Made by a program: the position numbers and the translations under genes. 64,000 nt of DNA from Blepharisma stoltei ATCC 30299 (taxonomy: Eukaryota > Protista > Ciliophora), in the NCBI GenBank assembly GCA_965603825.1, contig CBFDEM010000011.1, positions 1,116,001-1,180,000 of the forward strand, in the 5' to 3' direction. The notes beneath the pieces were generated by a model that saw only the letters and a list, made by a program, of their open reading frames with translations, searched no databases and was not told the DNA's origin. This document shows positions 42,368 to 64,000 of this stretch, piece by piece (the stretch's first letter is position 1; the number at the start of each line of letters is the position of its first letter).

Positions 42368-45300
42368 TTAATGGCTGAAAATGTATTTCAAAGGCGGGAG
42401 CTTCATATGAGTCCTATCTTCTGCTGAGACTGCATATAAGATAAGACAAACTGAAGTTTTTCCATCTGTTTTGTCTTCACTAATTTCTCTATATAGCTCA
42501 TAAACTTCTTTCTTGAATATTTCATCTTTATTACCTGCCATATATTTATTAAACAGACATTTAGTACCACAACCAATCTGTATCGCCAAAATCTTGTATT
42601 TTTCTTTTAAGTTCTCAATTAATTCTTCTATCGTGCAAGGCCCATCCACTACAATTTCATCCCATTTAGTAAAGCCATCATTATATGCTTTCTTAGGAGC
42701 TGCCAAAGTTTCATCATAATCTACAGATTTAATCATTATTGCAGGCTGAGGTTCGAGAAAAGAAAAATAAGAAATGGCCAAGTTCATAAAGCAATCCCTC
42801 ATTTTCTCTATTTCAAGCCCAAGAGTATATTTAATAAACTCAGCGACCACAATTCCAGCAATAACTGCAGTGGTTGTTGCGAGGGCTGGATTATTTTTCC
42901 AGCGATTACCTTGGTTTGGTGCCTTTCTATAGTAGAAATTCGGTAGTTATTTGCCCTCAAACTTGAAGCATTGTGGATAAAATCGATATGAAAATTGCTG
43001 TCATCATCTTTTTCAAAGGAAATTGGGGTCATAGGCTTGATATTTTCTAGTGAAAATCCTTTGAGCCAGCTTATTAGTTCTTCTTTTAATTTAATTTCAG
43101 CTTCTGATGCAGGCCGCTGCTCTTCATTATCATCTATTTTAATTTTTCTTGGGATAAATTCCTTAACCTGGACTTTAGACGCAATTTCTTTTATGTAATT
43201 TCTGTCTCTATTCTGAGGGATATTAAGGTTAAAGGCTAGCAAATTTGCATAGGATTCTATAAAGTCTATATGATTTTCTTTTTCTGTGTCAAAAATACAA
43301 GGCTCAGGCAGCCTCCTGGTCCCTGTCCAAAGATCTTTACCATGCTTGTCTTTTGTGCCGGGCGGACATTGATGTAGTAAAGACCTTATTTCTTCATAAA
43401 AAAGCTCATTAAACTTATGTCTTGCTATTATAATACAATCATCAAAGCTGCTTATCCCAGAAAGTTCTAAAAATTCTTTTAGCAGCTTTAACTGGGCCAT
43501 CTGCATATCAAAATGCCCAATACTTCCCAATTTTTGTAAATAAGCCTCTGGGTTTTCTAAATATTTATTCAACTCATCAGGGCCAGAGGTAAAGAAATCT
43601 GACAATTTTTCTCTTGACCAATCAATACAATGAGAAATTTCATATGGATAATGCTTCAAAGTGCATGATTTAGCTTTCGTTTCTGTTGGCTGTGGGGTAT
43701 CTTCATAGCTTTGGGTCAGATATGGAATGATTGCTTGGGAGTTTGCTTTTGTCCCTTCTGTTCCGCTTTCAAAAAGTGGCTTTTTGTAATAAACACATTT
43801 TCGGTCAATAAAAATTCGTGCACTGGCATTATCAACAGCCCCAAAAACTGCATTTAATTTCTCCCAAAACCTATCATTAAACAAGTTTTCTGTTTCTGGG
43901 CAAGCTCTGTTTTTCAAAGCAGTGACATTTATTTCTGGGTTCATGATTTTCGCTATCCTTGTAGCACATTCACTTTTGGATTGACCTACATTGGTAATAT
44001 TGAATAAAAACTGCCTTGTCAGGTTTGAGATTTCTACATTATCGTCGTCAGTGACTGTAAGCTCTCCAGTCCCACAGCAAACTCCGGATAATGCAAAAAG
44101 CTTTAAAAATTCGCAGCCTAAAGCACCAGATCCGACCATAAATAAATTGGCTGATTTAAGCTTGTTTAGTCCTTCTTCTCCTATAATTGCTTGGAGATCG
44201 TGATATCTTGAGTCAGAAATACTTGCAGATGGCTGAATTAGCTCAAACCAGTCCATATGTAGCCACTGCTGGATTGGGGTAAATTTTCCTGTGAATTTTA
44301 TGACTTCTTGAGCTGCAATTCCGCCAAATATTGATGTGATTGGAGAAATTTGTAGCCTTGCGTATTTTGAGACGTTTTTAATGACAGATTCATCAATTGT
44401 TTCTAATGAAAAGTCTTCTGAGGCTTCATTAATTTCTCTTGCATAAGCCACACAAAGATTTGCGTGGTCCTCATTATGGATTTCAGGAAGAAATCCGTGG
44501 ATTTCTTGGAATTTTCTGATAGCAAGCATGGCTAAATGTAAATTGGCAGGTCTGTTTTCTTTTAAGTAATCAACATGCATAAAAGGCTTTAATCCTTCAG
44601 GATTTTTAATAGAAATTTCATAAGGCCGGAAATCATAATGGAAAGGTTTTCTTACTTCTTCAACTGTCCCATATTTTATATAATCAGGGTAATCTGTGGT
44701 ATCTTCATCTATAGAAAAGCTGTGCGGGTCAATATAAGTGACCTTTCGTTCTCTGCCATCATTAAGAGGAGTCATTCCTTCGACTTCTTTGAACTTTATG
44801 TAGTCTCCGTCCTGAAACCAATGCTTGTCCTCATCATTTAGCTTCACAACTCCAGGATTGCTTCTGCTTATATTTCCAACCAAGTACGTTCTTAAGGCTG
44901 ATCCATTTTTGTCAGAAATTTCAAAATTATCCCCAAAATCTACAAAAACGTGCCCAGCTGTCCCCCATGTTTCGACAGACACAAATCCAACCTGTGGGCT
45001 TAAGTCTCGGCAAATGGAGTTAACCCTTATAAGTGTGGCACTATCACTTTCAGTGAGAAGGACTAAAGAGTGTTGAGAAATGACTTCTCGAGTAATTTCT
45101 CCTCTGTGGATATTTACTGAGACATTTGGGTTGAGCGCTTGAAGCTTGGAGATGACTGATTCAGCTCGATTTTGGCTGACATGGGATTCATTTATGAAAA
45201 AATTGGTCCCTAAATCGGAGAGAGAAATTATAGCATCATCATGCAAAGTGACTGTATGGAGGCCAGCTAATATTAAGTTTTTAGCGACTTCAAGACCAAC

Positions 45301-45405
45301 CCCACGGAGTCCAGAAACTAAAACGCGTAAGGTGAAAAGCTTTTTTTGAGTAGCCATACCGATGGCAGCAATAGAGCGTGAATAGAGATTATCTTGATTT
45401 GACAT
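42368..45405 (-). CDS. UBA1-type ubiquitin-like activating enzyme E1-A (about 1012 aa; 1-nt frameshift near 42888)
   Basis: LYSR, GLRGVGLEVAKN, GSGALGCE, DDDNVEISNLTRQFLF, catalytic KSCTLKHYP (Cys codon 43663-43665), FEKDDD..HIDFI; restoring one C gives GKIIPALATTTA, joining the UFD ORF 42368..42850. Confidence 0.92.
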
Positions 45406-45889: not shown

Positions 45890-46330
45890 TTATCCCATAG
45901 CATACTGCTGAGTCCACTCTCTTGCCCTTTGGTTATATAAGTCCATGTTTTGAGCGCACAATGTATTAATTTCAGTTGAGAACCCGTTTGGACTAGGGTT
46001 ATACAATAGTGCTATCACATAAGAGATTACAGTTCTTACAGTGACTTTTGGCTTCCATCCAGAATTAAAGATTTCGCAGCAAATACGGCCATCAGAAGGA
46101 TGTACGTTCGGGTGGAAAATTTTCGTTTTGAAATAGAAGGTCGGAGGGCTCGCAGGGAAATTTGAAGGGAAAGTTATTTCGAACTTGAACATACCACCTT
46201 CATAGGGGCTCTCATCAGGACCGTTTAGAGTTCCTCTCCAGTGAAATAGTGATTGATCTACTAAATTTACAGTGATGCAAGGCTCAGGTATTTCTAGAAG
46301 ATTGTTAAATTCATTCGTGAGTCGCTCCAT
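45890..46330 (-). CDS. Divergent UBC-fold conjugating enzyme E2-1
   Basis: W..GP.ESPYEGG.F, FHPNV..DGRICCEIF. Confidence 0.95.
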   Translation of the reverse strand: MERLTNEFNNLLEIPEPCITVNLVDQSLFHWRGTLNGPDESPYEGGMFKFEITFPSNFPASPPTFYFKTKIFHPNVHPSDGRICCEIFNSGWKPKVTVRTVISYVIALLYNPSPNGFSTEINTLCAQNMDLYNQRAREWTQQYAMG

Positions 46331-46969: not shown

Positions 46970-47404
46970 TTATTTAGCAAAATCAGCCGTATATCGCTTT
47001 GCCTCTCTTTCATAAGCTGATACATTGGCTCTCATAGTATTGCATGCATCATTAACGTATCCTTGCTCAGGGCACGGCTCAGCTAGTAAATGGCAAATAG
47101 CACAAAGGACAGCTCTCATTGATATTCCAGGTCTCCAAGCAACGCTTAATATTTCGGAGCATACTTTACCCTCAGAATTCACATTTGGATGATAAATCCT
47201 TGTACGGAAGAAAAACTCAGGGGGAGATACTGGGAAATTGGAAGGGAAAATTATATCAAAGCGGAAGTTTCCACCTTCAAAAGGAGTTTCTGGAGGACCA
47301 ATTAATAGACCATTCCAGTGCAGCATGTCTTGACCTAGGTTAATTTCGATTCCTTTGATAGGATTTTCCATGAGTTTATTGAATTCTTGTAATATTCTAT
47401 CCAT
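46970..47404 (-). CDS. Divergent UBC-fold conjugating enzyme E2-2
   Basis: GPPETPFEGG.F, YHPNVNSEGKVCSEIL. Confidence 0.95.
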   Translation of the reverse strand: MDRILQEFNKLMENPIKGIEINLGQDMLHWNGLLIGPPETPFEGGNFRFDIIFPSNFPVSPPEFFFRTRIYHPNVNSEGKVCSEILSVAWRPGISMRAVLCAICHLLAEPCPEQGYVNDACNTMRANVSAYEREAKRYTADFAK

Positions 47405-47868: not shown

Positions 47869-50142
47869 ATGCCTACAAGAAAAGGCTCACTTTCATGAGC
47901 TTCAAAGGCAGCTATTTCTATTATTGAATGCAATAAAGATCGACTATGTATCGATCCAAATTCGCCAATAGGCAAATTATTAGCAGATTTTGAATCAAGC
48001 TTGGAGTTTTTACCATTTAGGGAAGAAAAATTCGTAGTTAATATTCTTGAATATATTTCTAAAAATTACGATCCAAAATACTTCGAAACAGTTCAAGATT
48101 CCAATATCAACGTAAAATATCTTAAAAAAAAAGATGAAGAAACTTACTTTTTTGAACAAATAAAAGCTAAAGAAGCACCTTTAGTTTTACTTAAAAGGCA
48201 TAGTGAGGATAAACCATATGCTTATTTTGAAAGAAACAATGGAACTGTTTATTTATTAACAGCGCTTTTTACTCAAAACGTGTTGAAAAGATTATATTGC
48301 AATTTCGGAAACCAATGGAAAAATCTCAGTGAAAACCCAGATGATAAAACACCAATAAAATTCAGAGAAGAAACTGTATACATTTATACAAAAATCAATA
48401 AAGAAGATCTTGATAAAGAAAAGGTCGATAAAATTCTTCCGTCCGAATGAGAAGGACATATAAAAGAAAACCTGCGAGAGTCTATAACAATATATTCCGT
48501 TAGCACAAATCAAAACCAGGCTGGGATAAAAATACCAAAAGATATTGAAGCTCAGCAGGAGTTAAAGCAAAAAATCCAAAATAAAAATGATGAAATACAA
48601 AATTATAAAGATCAATTAGAGAAATCAAAAATTGAAAATGAGAAATTAAAAGAAACCATAAAAAGTTTAAGTGGCGAAAAAGAAAAAAATATCGAAATTC
48701 GTCAAGGGCTAATAAATGAAAATGAGAAATTAAGAGATCTCATAGAAAATTTAAATGTGAAAATAAACGAAAAAAATGCTGATATCAGTAAAGAATTGCA
48801 AAAAAGTAATTCAGCCCAACAAGAATTAAGCAAAAATATCCAAAATAAAGAGCAGATGATAGAATATTATAAAAATCAATTATCATGTTTGGAAAATGCA
48901 AACGAAAAATTGCAAAAAGAGCTAAAAATAATAAATGATGAATTAAAAGAAAAAAACATCAAAATTGATTCGCAAAATCAAGAAATTCTAAATAGAGACG
49001 ATATAATTAAAAACTATAAAGAACAATTTGAGGAACTTACAAACGAAAGAAATAAATATCAAAAAGAAATAAAAGAACTGAAAATTGAACTTCAAAAAGC
49101 AGTAGATGAAAATATAAATTTGTCTGCAATTAATGCAATTCTACAGAAAGAAGCTGAAACCGAAGCTCAATCATTAATCCAAGTAAAAGAAATTTATAAA
49201 ACTCAAAACGAAGCCTTAGTTCAAGAAAGGGAAAATCTTCAGCCTCAATTAAAAGCATTAAGTGAAGAAACTAAAGAATTCAAATCAATAAGCCTGCCTC
49301 CTAGGATTATAAGACGTCCAATAATTTATGACGGGAAAAAATCAGGGATTCCTAATATAGGGAATACCTGCTATCTTAATTCACTTCTTCAATTGCTTGC
49401 GAGCAACAATGAATTTTACGATAAAATCCAGCCTATCGAACATGAATTATTTTCTTCGTTATCCTCACTATTAAAGAGCATCAGAAATCCTGGATCCTAT
49501 AATAATACCGATCAACTTGTTAGGTCCTTTAAATACCAACTTGGTGCAGAATTCCCAATGGTAACCTTTATATAGCTTGGAAATTCATCTCAGCAAGATT
49601 CTAAAGAAGTAATGGTGATGCTGACAGGCATACTATCAGAATTAACTAATATAGACTCTATTTTTACAACTATCTATAAACAAATATTTAAATGCCATGC
49701 TTGTGGAAACAAAGCTAATAGGGATGATACAAATATTTTTATTACAGTTCCCAGGGGTAAATCTCGCTCTATACAAGAATTTTTACCAATTTTAAAACAG
49801 CCAAAATATTACACCGGAAGTAACCAATTATTTTGCGAGAATTGTCAAAATATGCAAAATATCACGATGGAGTGTGAAGAAATAATTTGGCCATCTACAG
49901 TTACCTTTTACCTGCCCTCGAATAATGGGAGTACTAAGATTAATGAAGAATTAAATATTGAAGGAACTACTTATAGATGGTATGGATTAATATGCCATTA
50001 TGGAAATTCACAATTTGGACATTATAAAGCATATACGTGGGATACCAAGAATTGGACTGAATATAATGATTTCAGTGCAAAAATTGATAAAGTCGATGTG
50101 GCAAATGGCTATCTAGCCTTTTATGCAAGGGCTGAGAGTTAA
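47869..50142 (+). CDS. USP (peptidase C19) deubiquitinase USP-1 (752 aa): N-terminal domain, coiled coil, catalytic domain
   Basis: ATG 47869; UGA=Trp read-through; GIPNIGNTCYLNSLLQ; intron 49561-49575 (GTAACCTTTATATAG) then QQDSKE; HYGNSQFGHYKAY..WTEYND. Confidence 0.9.
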
Positions 50143-53143: not shown

Positions 53144-53398
53144 ATGCCTACCTTGACTATAAGAGTTGAAGATATGGAAGGAAATGTACGCATACAGCAA
53201 GTAGATAGCTCTTGAACTTATGCTCGACTTCACGAAGAGCTTTTAAAATTGTTTGAGAATCCAAACTCAACACCGACTGTGATTTGCAATAGTAAGTATA
53301 TGAACTTGGCGATATCAGGTGGACGTACTTTGGAAGAGCTGCGCTTTGAAAACAACTGTTCACTCCAACTTCTTGAGAAAATGAAAGGGGGAAATTAA
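53144..53398 (+). CDS. Ubiquitin-like modifier UBL-B precursor (84 aa, ends MKGG-N), intact
   Basis: With UGA=Trp: MPTLTIRVEDMEGNVRIQQVDSSWTYARLHEELLKLFENPNSTPTVICNSKYMNLAISGGRTLEELRFENNCSLQLLEKMKGGN*; beta-grasp pattern, GRTL motif, di-Gly. Confidence 0.88.
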
Positions 53399-54928: not shown

Positions 54929-55921
54929 TTATATAGAATTACCTAATTTTAAATAAAAAAGTATATAAGCATGATTATAGTCAGGAGGATCTTCTGTCAC
55001 AAAAGCGTCATTAAACTTATACCATTTTCCATTATCACAAGTATAAGCAATATAGTGGCCACATTGCCCGCCTCCATAATAGCATATTAAAGCATATAGT
55101 CTATAGTCACTTTCCTGGAAATTTATTTCTGTCTCAAGTTTTCTATTCTTATTCGAAGTATCAGTAACATAAAATACCAAAATTTCTGGCATTTCTAAAG
55201 AATCTACTGCGATTGTAGAGCTGGTTATTTCCTGACAAACTTCGCATTGCAAATTTAATTTATCTTTTTTGCTTTTTATGTTTTCTAAACATATTTTTGC
55301 ATTTTATTTATCCTTTGGAGCTATAATAAAAAATAATGATTTATCTGATTTTATAACTTTATGGCCTTTCTGGCATGTAAAAGTTTGGTTTTTTGTGATC
55401 TGAAATCTTTTTTCCTCATGGCTAAATTCTTGTATATATATATCTATTAGAATATTATAAAGCTCTTTACAGTCGTTCTGGGCATTAAGTTCGTACTAAA
55501 TATTGTTTACCGTAGGAAATTTTTCTTTAAGTGTATTTAAAAAATTTATAATGCCTGGTTTAAAATCACTTGATGAGATACGGGAAAGCATAAGGTAAAA
55601 AATTATTAATAAATTTCTGAATAAAATGGTGTTAGATTTCGATATGAAATCTACAAAATTTGGAGTGCTTGCTAGAACTTGGAGTACAGAATTTAAATAG
55701 CAGGTATTTCCATAGTTAGGAATTCCACTCTTTCTAGAGCATTGATTTCCAAAAGACAAATTTTCTAGCTCTTGATAATCTCTAGAGTCCTTTAGCTTTT
55801 TGTTTTGTTTATTTTTACGATTTCTCAATCATGCTACTAGTTTTGGGAAAAAATAAATAATAACTAATATTGCAACTATATATCCTCCTCTTTTAGCAAA
55901 ATACTTAATATCATAGCTCAT
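54929..55921 (-). CDS. USP deubiquitinase USP-2 with N-terminal TM anchor (325 aa)
   Basis: MSYDIKYFAKRGGYIVAILVIIYFFPKLVA-W(UGA)-LRNRK; GIPNYGNTCYLNSVLQ; intron 55496-55510 then AQNDCKE; GGGQCGHYIAY..WYKFND. Confidence 0.9.
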
Positions 55922-56873: not shown

Positions 56874-58939
56874 ATGTCAGAAGAGCTTAAAAAAGCAGTT
56901 TATATTCTTGCAACGATCAATCAGCATATAAAATTTCCTTTCAAAAATCCATGTTTAAGCAAAATTTTTCAAAATGCTTTTACCTCAGGCATTGATAATG
57001 AAGATCTTAGACTACTTGAAAAATACACATTGCCATTGCCAAGCTTTGATAGCGCATATCATATTGTAAAGGATATCATTAGATTCCAGAAATGAGAAGA
57101 TATTTTTGCTTGGCCGAACAAATTATTGCAACCATTTCAAGTATCTGACATACCTAAAAAAATTCAAAAAGTTGCATTTTTTTGCGTTTGCACTAATAAG
57201 GATTATATAGAGGAAATAGAAGGCTACAACTTAATTGTAAAACTTGTTCTACCTGAAGGGATTTTACAATGTAAATACTGAGAAGAATGAAAGAGCTGCT
57301 CATCTTCTCAGGAAATGGACAAAAATAGTAAGCCTAAAATCTATTCCGCAATTTTTGGCTTTGTTAAAAACTGAGGAGTGATTCCAAAAAATGAAGAAAC
57401 GGCAGAGAATGAAATAGAAAAAGTGGAAGATGAAGAAGCAAGAATAGAAAAAATTGAAGATAACCCTCAATATTTTGAAGAAAATGATACTAAAAATATA
57501 AATGCGGACCAAATAAATGAAAAATTCAAACAAATAGAAGAGCTATCTAAATGCAAACAAAGCAATGAAAGCAATGAAAGCCTCCAAGCTGAGCTAATAA
57601 GAGTAAAAATTGAAAATAAAAAAGCGTGCAATGATATAAGTGAAATAAAAGCAATGATAGAGGACGTGAGAAATTCTTTGAATGAAAAAATAGATGAGAC
57701 TAACATAAATTTAAAAAAAGTTTAAATTATTTAAAAGAAGGACTAGATAAAGATCAATTATTTATGGAAAATGTCCTTGAAAATTGCCAAAGTAATTTAA
57801 ATCAACTTAAGTATTACAGAAATAGCTCAAATTATGCACCAAAAAATAAAAATCGCGATTTTTCTTTAAATTTTAATGTTGTTTCTGATAATTTTCAATG
57901 CATCAATCAAACTGTTCAAGATTATATCCAAAAATTCAATCAACTGGAAATTAAATGCAATTCATTAGTAGATATATGCAATAAAATGATAATTGAGAAT
58001 GATAGCAAAGATTCATCATTAAAGGCGAAAATTGATGAAATTGAAGAAAAGATCAAGAAAGTTTCAATATCAAATGGAAATGAATTAATTTCAAGCCCAA
58101 AAAATGCTCCTGACTTAAAAATTATAAATAACAACACTCCAAAAAGGAAAAAAAGGGGGTTAACCAATATAGGGAATAGTTGCTATCTGAATTCAGTTTT
58201 ACAGATCTTTGCAAGTGTTCAAAATTTCGTAGAAAATATAAGAAACATTGAGAATGACTTATTTTATTGCTTAGGTGATGTACTATCGTCGATAACAGAT
58301 CCCTACTCTATAAAAATAGACGAAAAATTAAGAAAACTAAGAAAATTGGTTACTAGCGAATATCCTATGGTAATTTATATATAGTTTGATGGAAATAAAG
58401 AAAATAGTTGCGAAGAATTATATACTATCATAATAAATATATTTATGGAATTTTGCCATAGTGAAATGTTTTTAATAAACAAAAATCAAGCGATAATTTG
58501 TGAAAATAACCACAGGTCAGAATTACCTGAGCATCAACTATTTTTAACTATACCCGATAATGAATTGTCATTTGTAGAATGGCTAAATCAGCTTGAAAAT
58601 GAGAAAAAATTATTTAGTGGAGATAATAATTTATTCTGTGAAACTTGTGGACAGAGATCTGACTCAGAGATTGTGACAGAAAGAATTGAGACTCATGAAA
58701 TTTTAGCTTTTTATAATGGCAAAAGTAAAAATTTGATTGAAAATGCTCCTAATTCTGTTTCTTTAGGGGAAAATCAGTATGAAATATTCGGAATAATTGT
58801 GTACAGTGGAAGACACTACATAGCTTATACAAAAGAAGAGGGAATTTGAAATGAGTATAATGATAATGAAGTCACAGCAAATAAGCATCCAAATCCAAAT
58901 AATAGCTATATGCTGTTTTATAAAAAAACTTACAATTAA
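56874..58939 (+). CDS. USP deubiquitinase USP-3 (about 683 aa; 1-nt deletion in A-run 57713-57719)
   Basis: UGA=Trp joins ORFs; GLTNIGNSCYLNSVLQ; intron 58370-58384 (GTAATTTATATATAG); YSGRHYIAY..I-W-NEYND..YMLFYKK. Confidence 0.85.
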
Positions 58940-59083
58940 TTAGTTTTTCATTTATCAAATTTTTAATAAATTATATTTATTTAATTTAAACTATCACTAC
59001 AAAATTTATAGTAAATAATTTTTCATCGTCAAAAATCATAAATTATTATGATTTACTTTCCATAATAATTATTTTAGAATAAA

Positions 59084-59521
59084 TTAAACTGCATAAGTCT
59101 GCGTCCACATCCTAGCTACATTTTCATATGCTTCTTTATCAGCATTTCTGATTGTCGTGGCATCATTAAGGTATCCATCCTCAGTGCTAGGTTCACTCAT
59201 GAGTACACAAATACTGTCAATGATCGACTCTACTGTTGTTGCACTTTGCCACTTGTAATTTAATAGCATCGTACAAGCTTTGCCATTCGAGTCCACGTTT
59301 GGGTGGAAAATAATCGTTTTGAAGTAAAATTCTGGAGGACTTTGAGGGAAGTCTCGAGGGAAAAGAATCTCGAATTGGAATCTTCCACCTTCAAAAGGAG
59401 TTTCTGGAGGTCCTATTAGTATCCCACCTCAGTGATAGAAATCATTGTCGATTAAATGGACTGATAATCCGTCGGTTGGGTCTTCACAGATCTTTGCGAA
59501 ATCAGCCTGGAGCTTTTGCAT
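59084..59521 (-). CDS. Divergent UBC-fold conjugating enzyme E2-3 (145 aa)
   Basis: MQKLQADFAKICED..FYH-W(UGA)-GGILIGPPETPFEGGRF..FHPNVDSNGKACTMLL; the UGA aligns to the conserved Trp of E2-1/E2-2. Confidence 0.93.
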
Positions 59522-59846
59522 ATATGTAGAATTATAAATAATGAATTTCTTTATTAGGGATATAAAGAAATGAAAAAGTTTAAAATAAATGAATTAGGAA
59601 ATACATACTGTGTTTTCAAGTCTTCATTTTTATATAATAGAGTCTCAATGTCTTTTAATAGGTATTTTTCTATGAATTCTAACAATTTGGCGAATTAGGC
59701 TCAAAGTCCCTTAATTTTTTAGACTCAGGAATTTTGCCTAATTTGATTTTTCCATAAACTCGTTCTTATTATATCTCCCTGCTCATATTTTCATCTTTAT
59801 GCACACTTTTAACTGAGAATTAAGGATTCTACATTTTCTGTTAATA

Positions 59847-62800
59847 ATGTCAAGTCAAGATCATCTCTATTCGCGCTCAATCGCTGCTATTGGGATGGCG
59901 ACTCAAAAAAAGCTTTTCACCATGCGAGTCTTGATTTCTGGTCTCCGAGGAGTCGGTCTGGAAATCGCTAAAAACTTGATCTTAGCTGGCCTCAACACAG
60001 TAACTTTACATGATGATTCTGTAATTTCGCTCTATGACTTAGGGACCAATTTCTACATAAATGAGTCTCATATAAACCAAAATCGAGCTGAATCAGTCGT
60101 CTCCAAGCTCCAAGAGCTCAACCCAAATGTCTCAGTTAGCATCTACAAAGGAGAAATTACCCAAGAAGTTATTTCTCAACACTCATTGGTGATTCTTACA
60201 GAAAGTGACAGCACCACGCTCAGAAGGGTGAATTCCATTTGTAGAGAGCTAAATCCTCAGGTAGGCTTTATATCTGTTGAAGCCTGAGGAGTGACTGGAC
60301 ATATTTTTGTAGATTTTGGGGATAGTTTCGAAGTTTCTGATAGAAAATGGACAGACTTGAAGAGCTATATTATTACCAATATAAGCAAAAGCAATCCTGG
60401 AGTTATAATGATAGAGTTGAGGCAAAGACAAATACTTCAGACTGGAGACTATGTAAGGTTCAAAGATGTCGAAGGAATGACTCCTCTTAATGATGGCAGA
60501 GAAAGAAAGGTCACTTATATAGGCCGGGACAGCTTTTCAATAGATGAAGACACCACAGAATACCCAGATTATATAAAATATGGAATAGTTGAAGAGGTCA
60601 GAAAACCTTTCCATTATGATTTTCGGCCTTATGAAGTCTCTATAAAAAATCCTGAAGAATTAAAGCCTTTCATACAGTCTGATCACTCAAAAGAAAACAG
60701 GCCTTCCCATCTGCATTTAGCTATGCTCGCAATCAGAAAATTCCAAGAAGTTCATGGATTTCTCCCTGAAGTCCACAATGAAGACCACGCAAACCTCTGT
60801 GTGACTTATGCAAGGGAAATCATTGAGGCTGCTTCACAAGAGATTTTTATAGATGCAGTTGACGATACCATCATTAAAAGCGTCGCAAAATATGCAAGAC
60901 TGCAAATTCCTCCAGTTACTTCTATATTTGGAGGAATTGCAGCTCAAGAAGTCATTAAATTCACAGGGAAATTTACTCCAATCCAGCAGTGGTTACATAT
61001 GGACTGGCTTGAGCTGATTCAGCCAACTGCAAGCATTGTTGACTCAAGATATCATGATCTCCAAGCAATAATAGGAGAAGAAGGACTAAACAAGCTTAAA
61101 TCAGTCAATTTATTTATGGTCGGGTCTGGAGCCTTGGGCTGTGAATTGTTACAGCTTTTTGCATTATCTGGAATTTGCTGTGGGGATGGAGAACTTACTG
61201 TCACTGATGACAATAATGTAAAAGTCTCCGATTTGACAAGGCAGTTTTTATTCAACTTGACTAATGTGGGGCAATCCAAAAGTGAATGTGCTACAAGGAT
61301 AGCGAAAATCATGAACCCAGAAATGAATGTCACTGCTTTGAAAAGCAGAGCTTGCCCAGAAACAGAAAACTTGTTTAACGATAGGTTTTGGGAGAAATTA
61401 AATGCAGTTTTTGGGGCTGTGGATAATATAGCTGCACGAATTTATATTGACCAAAAATGTGTTTGGTATAAAAAGCCTCTCTTTGAAAGTGGAACAAAAG
61501 GGACAAAAGCGAAATCTCAAGTAATCATTCCATTTTTAACCCAAACATATTCAGATATCCCATGGAAGCATGAAAAGAAAATCTTAACGGATAATCTATA
61601 TTTTCCATATGCAATTTCTCACTGTATCGAGTGGTCTCGAGAAAAATTGTTAGATTACTTTACTTCTGGTCCTGGAGAGCTAAATAAGTACTTGGAAAAC
61701 CCTGAGGCTTATATGCAAAAACTACGAAGCATGAACAATGCTGGAACACAAGTTGTCCAGCTAAAACAACTTAAAAAATATTTAGAGCTTTCTAAAATAA
61801 GTAGCTTTGATGATTGTATTGCTACCGCAAGACATAAGTTTAATAAGCTGTTTAATGAAAAAATTAGAACCTTATTACATCAATTTCCCCCTGGTAGTGA
61901 TTTTTGGTCAAGGACTAGGAGATTGCCTGAGCCTTGCATTTTTGACACAGAAAAAGAAAATCATATAGGCTTCATAGAAGCTTATGCGAATTTGGTAGCC
62001 TTTAACCTTAACATCCCACAGAATAGAGACAGGAATTACATAAAAGAAGTAGCGTCTAAGGTCCAAGTTAGGGAGTTTGCCCCAAAAAAAGCCTATATGA
62101 AATTAGACGATAATGAGGGCCAGCAGCCAATCGAAAAATCTGACATAGAATTAAGAGAAGAATTGCTGAGTTGGGTCGAAGAATTTTCATTAGAAAATGT
62201 CAAGCCAATGACACCAATTGCATTTGAAAAAGATGATGATACTAATTTCCATATTGATTTTATCCACAATGCTTCAAGTTTGAAGGCGAATAATTTCAAA
62301 ATTTCTACAATAGAAAGACACCAAACCAAGGTTAGTGCTGGAAGAATCATCCCAGCTCTGGCTACAACAACTGCAGTTATTGCTGGAATTGAGGTAATTG
62401 AATTTATTAAATATACTATTGGGCTAGAATTAAAAAAAATGAGGGATTGCTTTATGAATTTGGCAAGCCCGCTTATCCTTTTTCCAGAGCCTCAGCCTGC
62501 AATAGTGATTAAATCTGTTGAATATGATGAAGTTTTTGCTGCTCCCAAGAGGGCATATAATGATGGCTTTACCAAATGGGATAATATTGTTATTGATGGG
62601 CCTTGCACAATGGGAGAGCTAATCGGCACTTTGAAAGAAAAATACAAGGTTTCACCATTACAGATCGCCTGTGGAAAGTTCTGCTTGTTTAATCACTATT
62701 CAAGAGATAATAAAGATGAGCTGCTTAGAAGAGAAGTTTATGAGCTATATAAAGAAATTAGTGGAGACAAAACAGGGGGTAAAAAGTCGATTGGTCTCAT

Positions 62801-62873
62801 GTTATATGCAGTCTCAGTTGAAGATAAAGCTCTAATGATGTTTCCACATTTGAAGTATATTTTCAGTCATTAG
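59847..62873 (+). CDS. UBA1-type E1-B (1008 aa), lacks the canonical catalytic Cys
   Basis: UGA 60285-60287 aligns to Trp of E1-A VETWG; closely similar to E1-A throughout; KILTDNLYFP replaces KAKSCTLKHYP. Confidence 0.92.
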
Positions 62874-63011
62874 CATTTAATTAAAATAAAGTTATATTGA
62901 AGTATTATTTGGCTTTTTATTAGTATAAATATTAAACGATTTTTAAAGTTAGAAAATTAAATTATTTATTACCATATTTACTTAATTTCATAAATTAATT
63001 GTAGATTTGAA

Positions 63012-63314
63012 ATGAAAATTCCTGAGGACCAGAAATACTGAGATTTATGTGCTTCAATTTGCTTGATTAATACTATAGTAGAATATCTTTATATTGATGA
63101 TGCAGGCCAAATTAGCAATTTAATGCAAATAGAGCAAGCTCTAAAAGATTCTCAAAAGTTTAACTTGAAAGAAGATTCAATAAAACAGCTGTGAGATCAG
63201 GCTAAAATGAAAAAGATATGATTTGAAACTGGCTCAACATTATTTTGAATGATAGTGATCTATGAAATTTGCTTTTTTATCAAGAACAAAATAAAACTTA
63301 GATTTCTTTGGTAA
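63012..63314 (+). CDS. Hypothetical 100-aa ORF next to the telomere (gene or fragment)
   Basis: Open only with four UGA=Trp: MKIPEDQKYWDLCASICLINTIVEYLYIDD..KQLWDQAKMKKIWFETG.. Confidence 0.4.
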
Positions 63315-63500
63315 GCTATTATAAGTTATGCCTAGGGCAAAATATTGAAAATAAGTTATTCCTATAAAAATGATGTTATATAATTATTATAATAACGACT
63401 TATTAAGATCAAATTTTATTTTAAATCTGCATTTTTTGGAGTAGTTCAATACGGTCTTGGTCTAATGCGTCGCTAATGAAATTGATTTCTTTTTTAGAAA

Positions 63501-64000
63501 GGGTGTAGTTAGGGTGTTAGGGTGGTTAGGGTGTTAGGGTGTTAGGGTGTTAGGGTGTTAGGGTGTTAGGGTGTTAGGGTGTTAGGGTGTTAGGGTGTTA
63601 GGGGTTAGGGTGTTAGGGCTGTTAGGGGTTAGGGTGTTAGGGGTGTTAGGTGTTAGGGTGTTAGGGTGTTAGGGTGTTAGGGTGTTAGGTGTTAGGGTGT
63701 TAGGGTGTAGGGTTAGGGTGTTAGGGGTGTTAGGGTGTTAGGGTGTTAGGTGTTAGGGTGTAGGGTGTTAGGGTGTTAGGGTGTTAGGGTGTTAGGGGTG
63801 GTGTTAGGGTGTTAGGGTGTTAGGGTGTTAGGGTGTTAGGGTTAGTGTTAGGGTGTTAGGGTGTTAGGGTGTTAGGGTGTTAGGGTGTTAGGGTGTTAGG
63901 GTGTTAGGGTGTTAGGGTGTAGGGTGTTAGGGTGTTAGGGTGTTAGGGTGTTAGGGTGTGTTAGGGTGTTAGGGTGTTAGGGTGTTAGGGTGTTAGGGTG
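63501..64000 (+). repeat. Telomere (TGTTAGGG)n, i.e. CCCTAACA repeat
   Basis: About 500 nt of an 8-nt repeat at the window end, with sporadic indels. Confidence 0.98.

Follow-up and report, generated by a model that had tools for sequence, protein, structure and literature searches.

Within the window analyzed here, a stretch of 64,000 nucleotides (nt) from Blepharisma stoltei ATCC 30299 (assembly GCA_965603825.1, contig 11, CBFDEM010000011.1, positions 1,116,001 to 1,180,000, forward strand), we identified a full-length UBA1-type E1 gene, E1-B, in which the thioester cysteine is replaced by aspartate and the ATP site is altered in an otherwise intact reading frame. With modest confidence, we interpret E1-B as a retained noncatalytic paralogue (a pseudo-E1) of a Blepharisma-specific UBA1-like E1; catalytic residues are missing from an otherwise intact homologue, as in other pseudoenzymes. 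The assembly comprises 41.5 Mb in 64 contigs, and the window ends 703 nt short of the end of contig 11. The parts of the gene on which the argument depends are as follows.

59847..62873, + strand: coding sequence of E1-B, 1008 codons and a stop codon, with no intron detected
60288..60290, + strand: in-frame TGA, read as Trp148
61200..61250, + strand: ATP-binding motif VTDDNNVKVSDLTRQFL, placed by alignment to human UBA1
61560..61622, + strand: catalytic-cysteine loop, placed with HMMER and a MAFFT alignment
62259..62306, + strand: SCCH helix, in which ASNLRAxNY is degraded to ASSLKANNF

The cysteine loop of E1-B reads KKILTDNLYFPYAISHC, with GAT at 61590-61592, and its counterpart in E1-A, a second E1 gene in the window, reads KAKSCTLKHYPYEISHC; both peptides and the GAT codon are in the sequence as the original prediction had claimed. 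HMMER aligns KKILTDNL-YFP of E1-B to EKSIPICTLKNFP of human UBA1 (9mc4/6dc6) and places Asp582 opposite Cys632. The loop has also changed from Pro to Leu580 and from Thr to Asn583, and it carries a one-codon deletion after Leu584, two positions past Asp582; Cys593 of the SHC motif is further downstream. Once E1-B was aligned by MAFFT to 109 outside UBA1 homologues, which served as our conservation set, the Cys632 column is cysteine in 109/109 outside sequences and likewise in the E1 genes of contig 28, contigs 15 and 35, and E1-A, so that the SCCH-loop cysteine expected of an active E1 is absent from E1-B. The change from TGT to GAT amounts to two substitutions, and it is not a lone assembly slip, since an exact contig from the DNA-like run X1 (even depth of ~20, with one contig of 77 kb) covers 61398-61700 and spans the Asp codon. 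Read support here and below comes from Logan contigs, for which the run types (DNA or RNA) were guessed.

The adenylation motif has drifted as well, as first noticed from the letters alone: E1-B has VTDDNNVKVSDLTRQ against the consensus VTDxDxIExSNLNRQ. In human UBA1 numbering the changes are Asp506 to Asn (61212-14), Ile508 to Val, Glu509 to Lys, and Asn512 to Asp (61230-32), and both Asp506 and Asn512 are invariant in 109/109 outside homologues. Asp504, Arg515, Lys528, Asp576, the Gly-rich loop, the Arg57 equivalent, and Lys851 are all kept. The literature reports Asp506, Asn512, Lys528, and Asp576 as contacts of the ATP beta-phosphate (PMC10448642, citing Lv et al.), Arg57, Arg515, and Lys851 as gamma-phosphate contacts, and Asp576 as holding Mg2+ (both PMC10448642 and PMC12355090); a complete ATP-Mg site, as in active E1s, is therefore lacking in E1-B, with Asn at 506 and Asp at 512. 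Because three positions invariant in all 109 homologues (Cys632, Asn512, and Asp506) are altered together in one copy, the apparent loss of the cysteine is not a chance event. A third motif, the SCCH helix, carries Asn811 to Ser, Arg813 to Lys, and Tyr817 to Phe; a search of the literature for the roles of the corresponding human residues Asn867, Arg869, and Tyr873 found nothing.

Outside these motifs the gene appears to be whole. No disabling stop or frameshift was found in the 1008 codons under the code of the organism, and the public annotation (P0001) is the same 1008-amino-acid (aa) translation, so the uninterrupted frame that had been predicted holds, given that the TGA at 60288-60290 encodes Trp. 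We read it so because all five Blepharisma paralogues have Trp in this column and the B. stoltei ATCC 30299 genome (41 Mb, with introns of 15/16 nt) uses UGA for Trp (PMC9942806); a bacterial code table breaks the frame there. The homology of E1-B to the UBA1-type family is clear, with two ThiF-type domains, FCCH, 4HB, SCCH, and a C-terminal UFD (in order IAD, FCCH, 4HB, AAD, SCCH, and UFD), and with the Pfam models ThiF, E1_FCCH, E1_4HB, UBA_E1_SCCH, and E1_UFD each past their cutoffs. Its best solved relatives in an HMMER comparison to the PDB are human UBA1, UBA6, and yeast Uba1 (E=8e-153). A structural model had been proposed as a check, and the AlphaFold (AF2) model, built with 70 homologues, is predicted to be a complete E1 fold, with a mean pLDDT (predicted local distance difference test) of 90.3 and a pTM (predicted template modeling score) of 0.86, and it superposes on UBA1 structures with template modeling (TM) scores of 0.87-0.91. 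The weakest stretches are the 741-770 linker and residues 571-590, the cysteine loop itself (pLDDT 58-72), which has the lowest model confidence within the SCCH region.

To place E1-B among its relatives, we compared the E1 genes of the genome, in which five UBA1-type genes are full-length and two further matches are partial. Paralogues were read with UGA as Trp, and deviations were counted over the 146 columns conserved in >=95% of the outside homologues.

Contig 28 E1: 1023 aa, canonical-looking UBA1, 2 deviations/146
Contigs 15 and 35 E1 (P0002): 1017 aa, identical copies, 10 deviations/146
42368..45405, - strand: E1-A, 1012 codons, Cys-bearing, 1-nt deletion in a CC run at 42888-42889, with an X at the frameshift; 16 deviations/146, the X being one
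E1-B: 1008 aa, 24 deviations/146
Contig 55 E1 (L011:2376-5258, minus strand): 961 codons (961 aa) with 2 in-frame TGA, Cys-less UBA1-type gene; 60 deviations/146

The E1-B protein shares 86.6% identity with the contig 15/35 protein, 76% with E1-A, and 45% with the canonical enzyme, and its true sister is the identical Cys-bearing pair on contigs 15 and 35 rather than E1-A, the comparator chosen in the original prediction. The sister resembles E1-B in its head-to-head E2-E1 cassette, its subtelomeric position, and the same in-frame TGA at the codon of Trp148, and it differs in retaining the cysteine and all ATP ligands, with 0/146 private deviations against 14 in E1-B. E1-A is moreover frameshifted in the assembly 173 codons before its stop; the conserved frame resumes in another phase and continues to the same KYIFSH stop, and the gene is annotated as a truncated product of 865 aa (P0003). 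Its omega (dN/dS) is 0.16 before the break and 0.18 after it, and this likeness on both sides implies a lesion of very recent date or a homopolymer error in the assembly.

The rate and placement of changes in E1-B provide evidence for retention. Pairwise, E1-B and the contig 15 copy differ by a dS of 0.254 and a dN of 0.067 (omega of 0.26); changes polarized with E1-A as the outgroup divide between the two branches as follows.

E1-B branch: 54 silent, 80 replacement, omega about 0.39
Contig 15 branch: 65 silent, 36 replacement, omega about 0.15

These ratios differ between the branches (Fisher P=4e-4), and the 80:54 ratio of E1-B also departs from the neutral expectation of 3.8:1 (P=3e-7), so that neutral evolution (omega about 1) does not describe the gene overall; to this extent the predicted intact pseudo-E1, full-length, Cys-less, and not freely drifting, is borne out. 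The three indels in the coding sequence relative to contig 15 (3, 18, and 6 nt) are all multiples of 3, and ~800 nt of noncoding or fragment DNA in the flanks has 6 indels, 4/6 of them not multiples of 3. Stop-creating changes (TAA or TAG) make up 3.7% of possible substitutions in E1-B, and none has occurred. A domain-by-domain dN/dS analysis, another check suggested at the outset, gave a mixed answer: the branch value is below 1, with 4HB/IAD-C (0.17) and SCCH (0.29) constrained and AAD intermediate, but FCCH and UFD are near neutral, and the counts per domain are small.

Among the 146 conserved columns, 14 deviations are private to E1-B and 0 to the contig 15 copy, and 10/14 of those in E1-B lie in three short motifs (E1-B numbering).

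ATP motif: D456N, I458V, E459K, N462D
Cys loop: P580L, C582D, T583N
SCCH helix ASNLRAxNY: N811S, R813K, Y817F

This clustering is significant in a permutation over conserved columns (P=0.01). Considering only the 136 columns intact in the sister, E1-B has changed 10/26 inside the active-site windows and 4/110 outside them (Fisher 8e-6); the former is at or above the neutral expectation for the whole branch (19-25%), and the latter is far below it (P about 1e-6). Since so much change at the active sites needs most of the branch length, catalysis was presumably lost early, and early loss together with constraint elsewhere is the pattern predicted for a retained noncatalytic protein. Purifying selection after catalytic loss is here read tentatively from one genome, with the timing of the loss inferred.

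We propose that the end of contig 11 received a copy of a 4.3-kb E2-E1 cassette belonging to the subtelomeric cluster that today is found on contigs 15/35. In E1-B the thioester cysteine has been lost (to Asp), as have two of the ligands of the ATP beta-phosphate (PMC10448642). The three active-site motifs have since changed at about the neutral rate or faster; frame, fold, and most universal residues were retained. Such a protein would not be expected to form a thioester with a ubiquitin-like protein (UBL), and its adenylation activity would probably be poor or nil. If E1-B acts, it would do so by binding, most likely as a competitor or scaffold for the UBLs or E2s of the cluster, and it may thereby damp or organize a private cascade whose active E1 would be supplied in trans by the contig 15/35 copies. 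Because UFD and FCCH are the least constrained domains, the AAD, IAD, 4HB, and SCCH surfaces are better candidates for binding, and sequestration of E2s through the UFD, one of the roles originally suggested, is not favored (10:3 replacement to silent changes in UFD and in FCCH). Precedents for retention exist in the same lineage: the Cys-less E1 of contig 55 is conserved, down to an identical loop, in a transcriptome that we take to be from another Blepharisma, and B. stoltei retains catalytically incomplete PiggyBac paralogues under purifying selection (PMC9942806).

The main alternative is that E1-B is a decaying redundant duplicate, surplus to the contig 15/35 copies, that has drifted under relaxed constraint and lost catalysis, is too young for frame breaks, and is still transcribed through a promoter region held in common with the functional E2. 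We consider this less likely than retention but a serious rival, and several observations that weigh against retention are the same ones that this alternative would predict. The omega of E1-B is 2.6x that of its sister, and private amino acid changes are about doubled (60 against 31, Tajima-type P=0.003), although private silent changes are 40 against 46; since silent rates are equal, the difference between the two copies is one of constraint and not of mutation. The 10:3 ratios in FCCH and UFD correspond to an omega near 0.8, so near to neutral that gradual decay fits these domains as well as a change of function does. E1-B is redundant to two identical active copies, and its subtelomeric position is a setting of rapid gene birth and death, in which E1-A is frameshifted and the next gene is a truncated stump. 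In addition, the three motif windows were drawn post hoc, after the hits were seen, and polarization is complicated by E1-A itself: over alignment columns 380-530 (~60990-61440), in the N-terminal half of the active adenylation domain, E1-B is as near or nearer to E1-A (3-10% nt divergence) than to the contig 15 copy, and silent private changes are skewed there (5 vs 15), which suggests gene conversion between E1-B and E1-A, inverted genes 14 kb apart.

Expression and variant data also bear on this question. Runs X8 and X9 (22-24 Mb total) leave 57300-59072 without cover, cover the neighboring E2 at a depth of 14-24, and contain exact E1-B pieces at a depth of 2-7, with no joints seen; the patchy cover and the empty 57300-59072 interval make them look RNA-like, which suggests that E1-B is transcribed at a low level. 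The proposed expression check thus returned exact contigs for E1-B in both runs, but at low depth and in runs whose RNA nature is a guess, and this evidence of expression is weak. E1 expression values were not found in the supplement of the genome paper (PMC9942806). Variant letters in X1 and X3 are mostly cross-mapping from contigs 15/35 or E1-A. One X3 contig (60162-60497) has seven transitions within 68 nt (60362-60429), including CAA to TAA at 60429, and has no match to any paralogue in the assembly. This contig may be artefactual, may come from a copy that the assembly lacks, or may represent an allele of the heterozygous partner strain HT-IV; if allelic, its premature stop would mean that E1-B is dispensable. 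Outside B. stoltei, the full-length search returned ordinary UBA1s at <=43% as the best among the matches listed, with fragments of 175-473 aa falling outside the length windows, and no orthologue of E1-B was found elsewhere, as neither the full-length search nor one with the 100-aa loop region gave anything closer than 45-53% among the matches listed.

What favors retention of E1-B over simple decay is the amount and location of change taken together. A short neutral phase of 20-40 substitutions would still give a P(no stop) of 0.2-0.5, but in a two-phase model an omega of 0.39 needs a neutral phase of ~28% of the branch, or ~76 substitutions, for which P(no stop) is about 0.06 and P(no frameshift) is about 0.1, jointly <0.01. 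A very recent loss of function predicts <2 changes in the 26 invariant active-site codons, where 10 are observed, and an early loss fails to explain why only 4/110 invariant codons changed elsewhere.

Alternatively, E1-B might still be an enzyme, either adenylating a UBL without a thioester (in a MoeB/ThiF-like or adenylation-only mode, as the original prediction allowed) or using another nucleophile such as Cys593 of the SHC motif; judged from sequence, we regard this as improbable. The retained residues of the ATP site and a predicted intact fold would be compatible with activity, and the paired changes of Asp506 to Asn and of Asn512 to Asp might leave the local charge unaltered. Against this, Asp506 and Asn512 are the very residues that are invariant in all outside homologues and are given as beta-phosphate contacts in PMC10448642, which makes an adenylation-only E1 less likely, and around both active sites the motifs show decay and not a new conserved state. 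Cys593 does not qualify as a replacement: it is an ordinary residue of the lineage, found in all five Blepharisma paralogues and in 52/109 outside UBA1s, all of which have the canonical cysteine. The only cysteine gained relative to the sister, residue 868, is shared with E1-A, so the comparison of E1-B cysteines with the paralogues and the 109 UBA1s gave no indication that another nucleophile has taken over.

An assembly or sequencing error or a misplaced frame that merely mimics loss of the cysteine is very improbable: HiFi assemblies can contain homopolymer errors, of which the E1-A frameshift may be one, but the codon is covered by an exact contig from an independent run, the two substitutions come with a clean deletion of 3 nt and with changes at 13 further conserved sites, and the loop contains no GT...AG intron candidate.

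Other origins for the altered loop were considered and set aside. A compensated frameshift is rejected, as no alternative frame of E1-B or of the contig 15 copy yields the peptide of the other, and so is a tiny in-frame intron hiding the cysteine, as the loop lacks a GT and comparison with the paralogues shows no insertion private to E1-B. The DNA of the loop does not recur elsewhere in the genome, and over its 69 nt the polarized changes number 8 in E1-B and 5 in contig 15, with 5 ambiguous; neither a single complex mutation nor a foreign donor is needed for changes so divided between the copies. A loop changing far faster than neutral was likewise rejected, since changes occur in both copies and the loop is fast in all members.

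The E1 of contig 55 provides an independent case of a full-length UBA1-type gene without the catalytic cysteine, one that is much older and more degraded than E1-B. Its loop reads IPNEFLIKYSP instead of IPMCTLKNFP, Arg515 is gone, and 60/146 conserved columns are changed. A transcript fragment from MMETSP (P0122), whose source we take to be another Blepharisma, is 86% identical to it over 292 aa and has an identical loop, and on sequence grounds this paralogue appears to be retained and transcribed across species in the Blepharisma lineage. It is a stronger pseudo-E1 case than E1-B. Taking both genes together, we tentatively suggest that whole UBA1-type E1s have been made noncatalytic at least twice in Blepharisma, once long ago (contig 55) and once recently (E1-B), with E1-B retained to regulate a private subtelomeric cascade by binding alone; this fuller account is somewhat less secure than the assignment of E1-B as a retained noncatalytic paralogue.

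E1-B shares the one-chain IAD-FCCH-4HB-AAD-SCCH-UFD layout of canonical UBA1 (human 6DC6/9MC4; yeast Uba1 3CMM) and is 34-43% identical to it, but differs in the altered Cys632, Asp506, and Asn512 and in the degraded ASNLRAxNY helix. Its subgroup is specific to Blepharisma and shares about 46% identity with the canonical UBA1 of the cell (contig 28).

Noncatalytic members are familiar elsewhere in ubiquitin-like pathways. NAE1/APPBP1, SAE1/AOS1, and the IAD of UBA1 are ThiF-fold modules without nucleotide or catalytic function that serve as structural partners; these halves are ancient, obligate parts of an active enzyme, whereas E1-B is a young, whole E1 whose active half is disabled (a comparison based in part on the review PMC12355090). 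The pseudo-E2s UEV1A/MMS2 and TSG101 retain the E2 fold without the catalytic cysteine for binding and regulation, a function established experimentally; they differ from E1-B in fold and in step, and the role of E1-B is proposed from sequence. More broadly, pseudo-E2s, pseudodeubiquitinases (pseudo-DUBs), and pseudokinases are established regulators. Catalytically incomplete PiggyBac/PiggyMac paralogues occur in Blepharisma and Paramecium (PMC9942806), and those of B. stoltei are under purifying selection beside one active copy, but they belong to an unrelated family and offer an analogy only. We found no description of a maintained full-length UBA1-type E1 lacking the thioester cysteine, and none appears in a 2025 review of E1s (PMC12355090), although this is limited evidence.

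If our interpretation of E1-B as a retained protein is correct, pseudo-E1s would join pseudo-E2s and pseudo-DUBs as a genuine class, and E1-B would show this class at its birth. Together with its nearly identical active sister in the same genome it forms a natural before-and-after pair, which could reveal the E1 surfaces that matter without chemistry as well as the regulation of a lineage-specific ubiquitin-like cascade. Should E1-B be no more than a dying duplicate, it would exemplify ordinary subtelomeric gene turnover, and the contig 55 protein would become the more interesting candidate.

The surroundings of E1-B are those of a subtelomeric duplication, with the following features.

59053..63356, no strand assigned: 4.3-kb segmental duplicate, 88.7% nt identity to contigs 15/35 (blastn, global alignment)
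59084..59521, - strand: E2 (UBC) gene, head to head with E1-B, HPN...C retained
63012..63356, + strand: 5' stump, with a 1-nt indel, of the 696-aa gene located after E1 on contigs 15/35
63505..64000, no strand assigned: telomeric repeat array with an 8-nt unit, continuing to the contig end 703 nt past the window

Besides the E2 and the E1, the duplicated segment takes in the intergenic region and the initial 345 nt of the downstream 696-aa gene, and since the complete downstream gene sits on contigs 15/35, the copy ran from there to contig 11. The E2 has an omega of 0.13 relative to its contig 15 copy. Telomeric repeats total ~1.2 kb and start ~150 nt past the stump of the 696-aa gene and ~630 nt past E1-B, and no intact gene follows E1-B on macronuclear contig 11. 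On contigs 15 and 35 the E1 copies lie 5-6 kb from the contig ends, and the segments holding the E2, the E1, and the downstream gene (contig 15, 684500-691500; contig 35, 771000-778000) are 100% identical over 6.7 kb, which points either to a subtelomeric duplication of very recent date or to a single locus that was assembled twice.

Three minus-strand E2 genes, each with HPN...C, are situated next to or between the two E1 genes of the window (45890-46330, 46970-47404, and 59084-59521). The same interval has USP-like open reading frames (ORFs) at 47869-50142, 54929-55921, and 56874-58939 and small UBL ORFs at about 53144-53398. By sequence, the E1, E2, USP-like, and UBL ORFs near the end of contig 11 appear to form a clustered ubiquitin-like toolkit.

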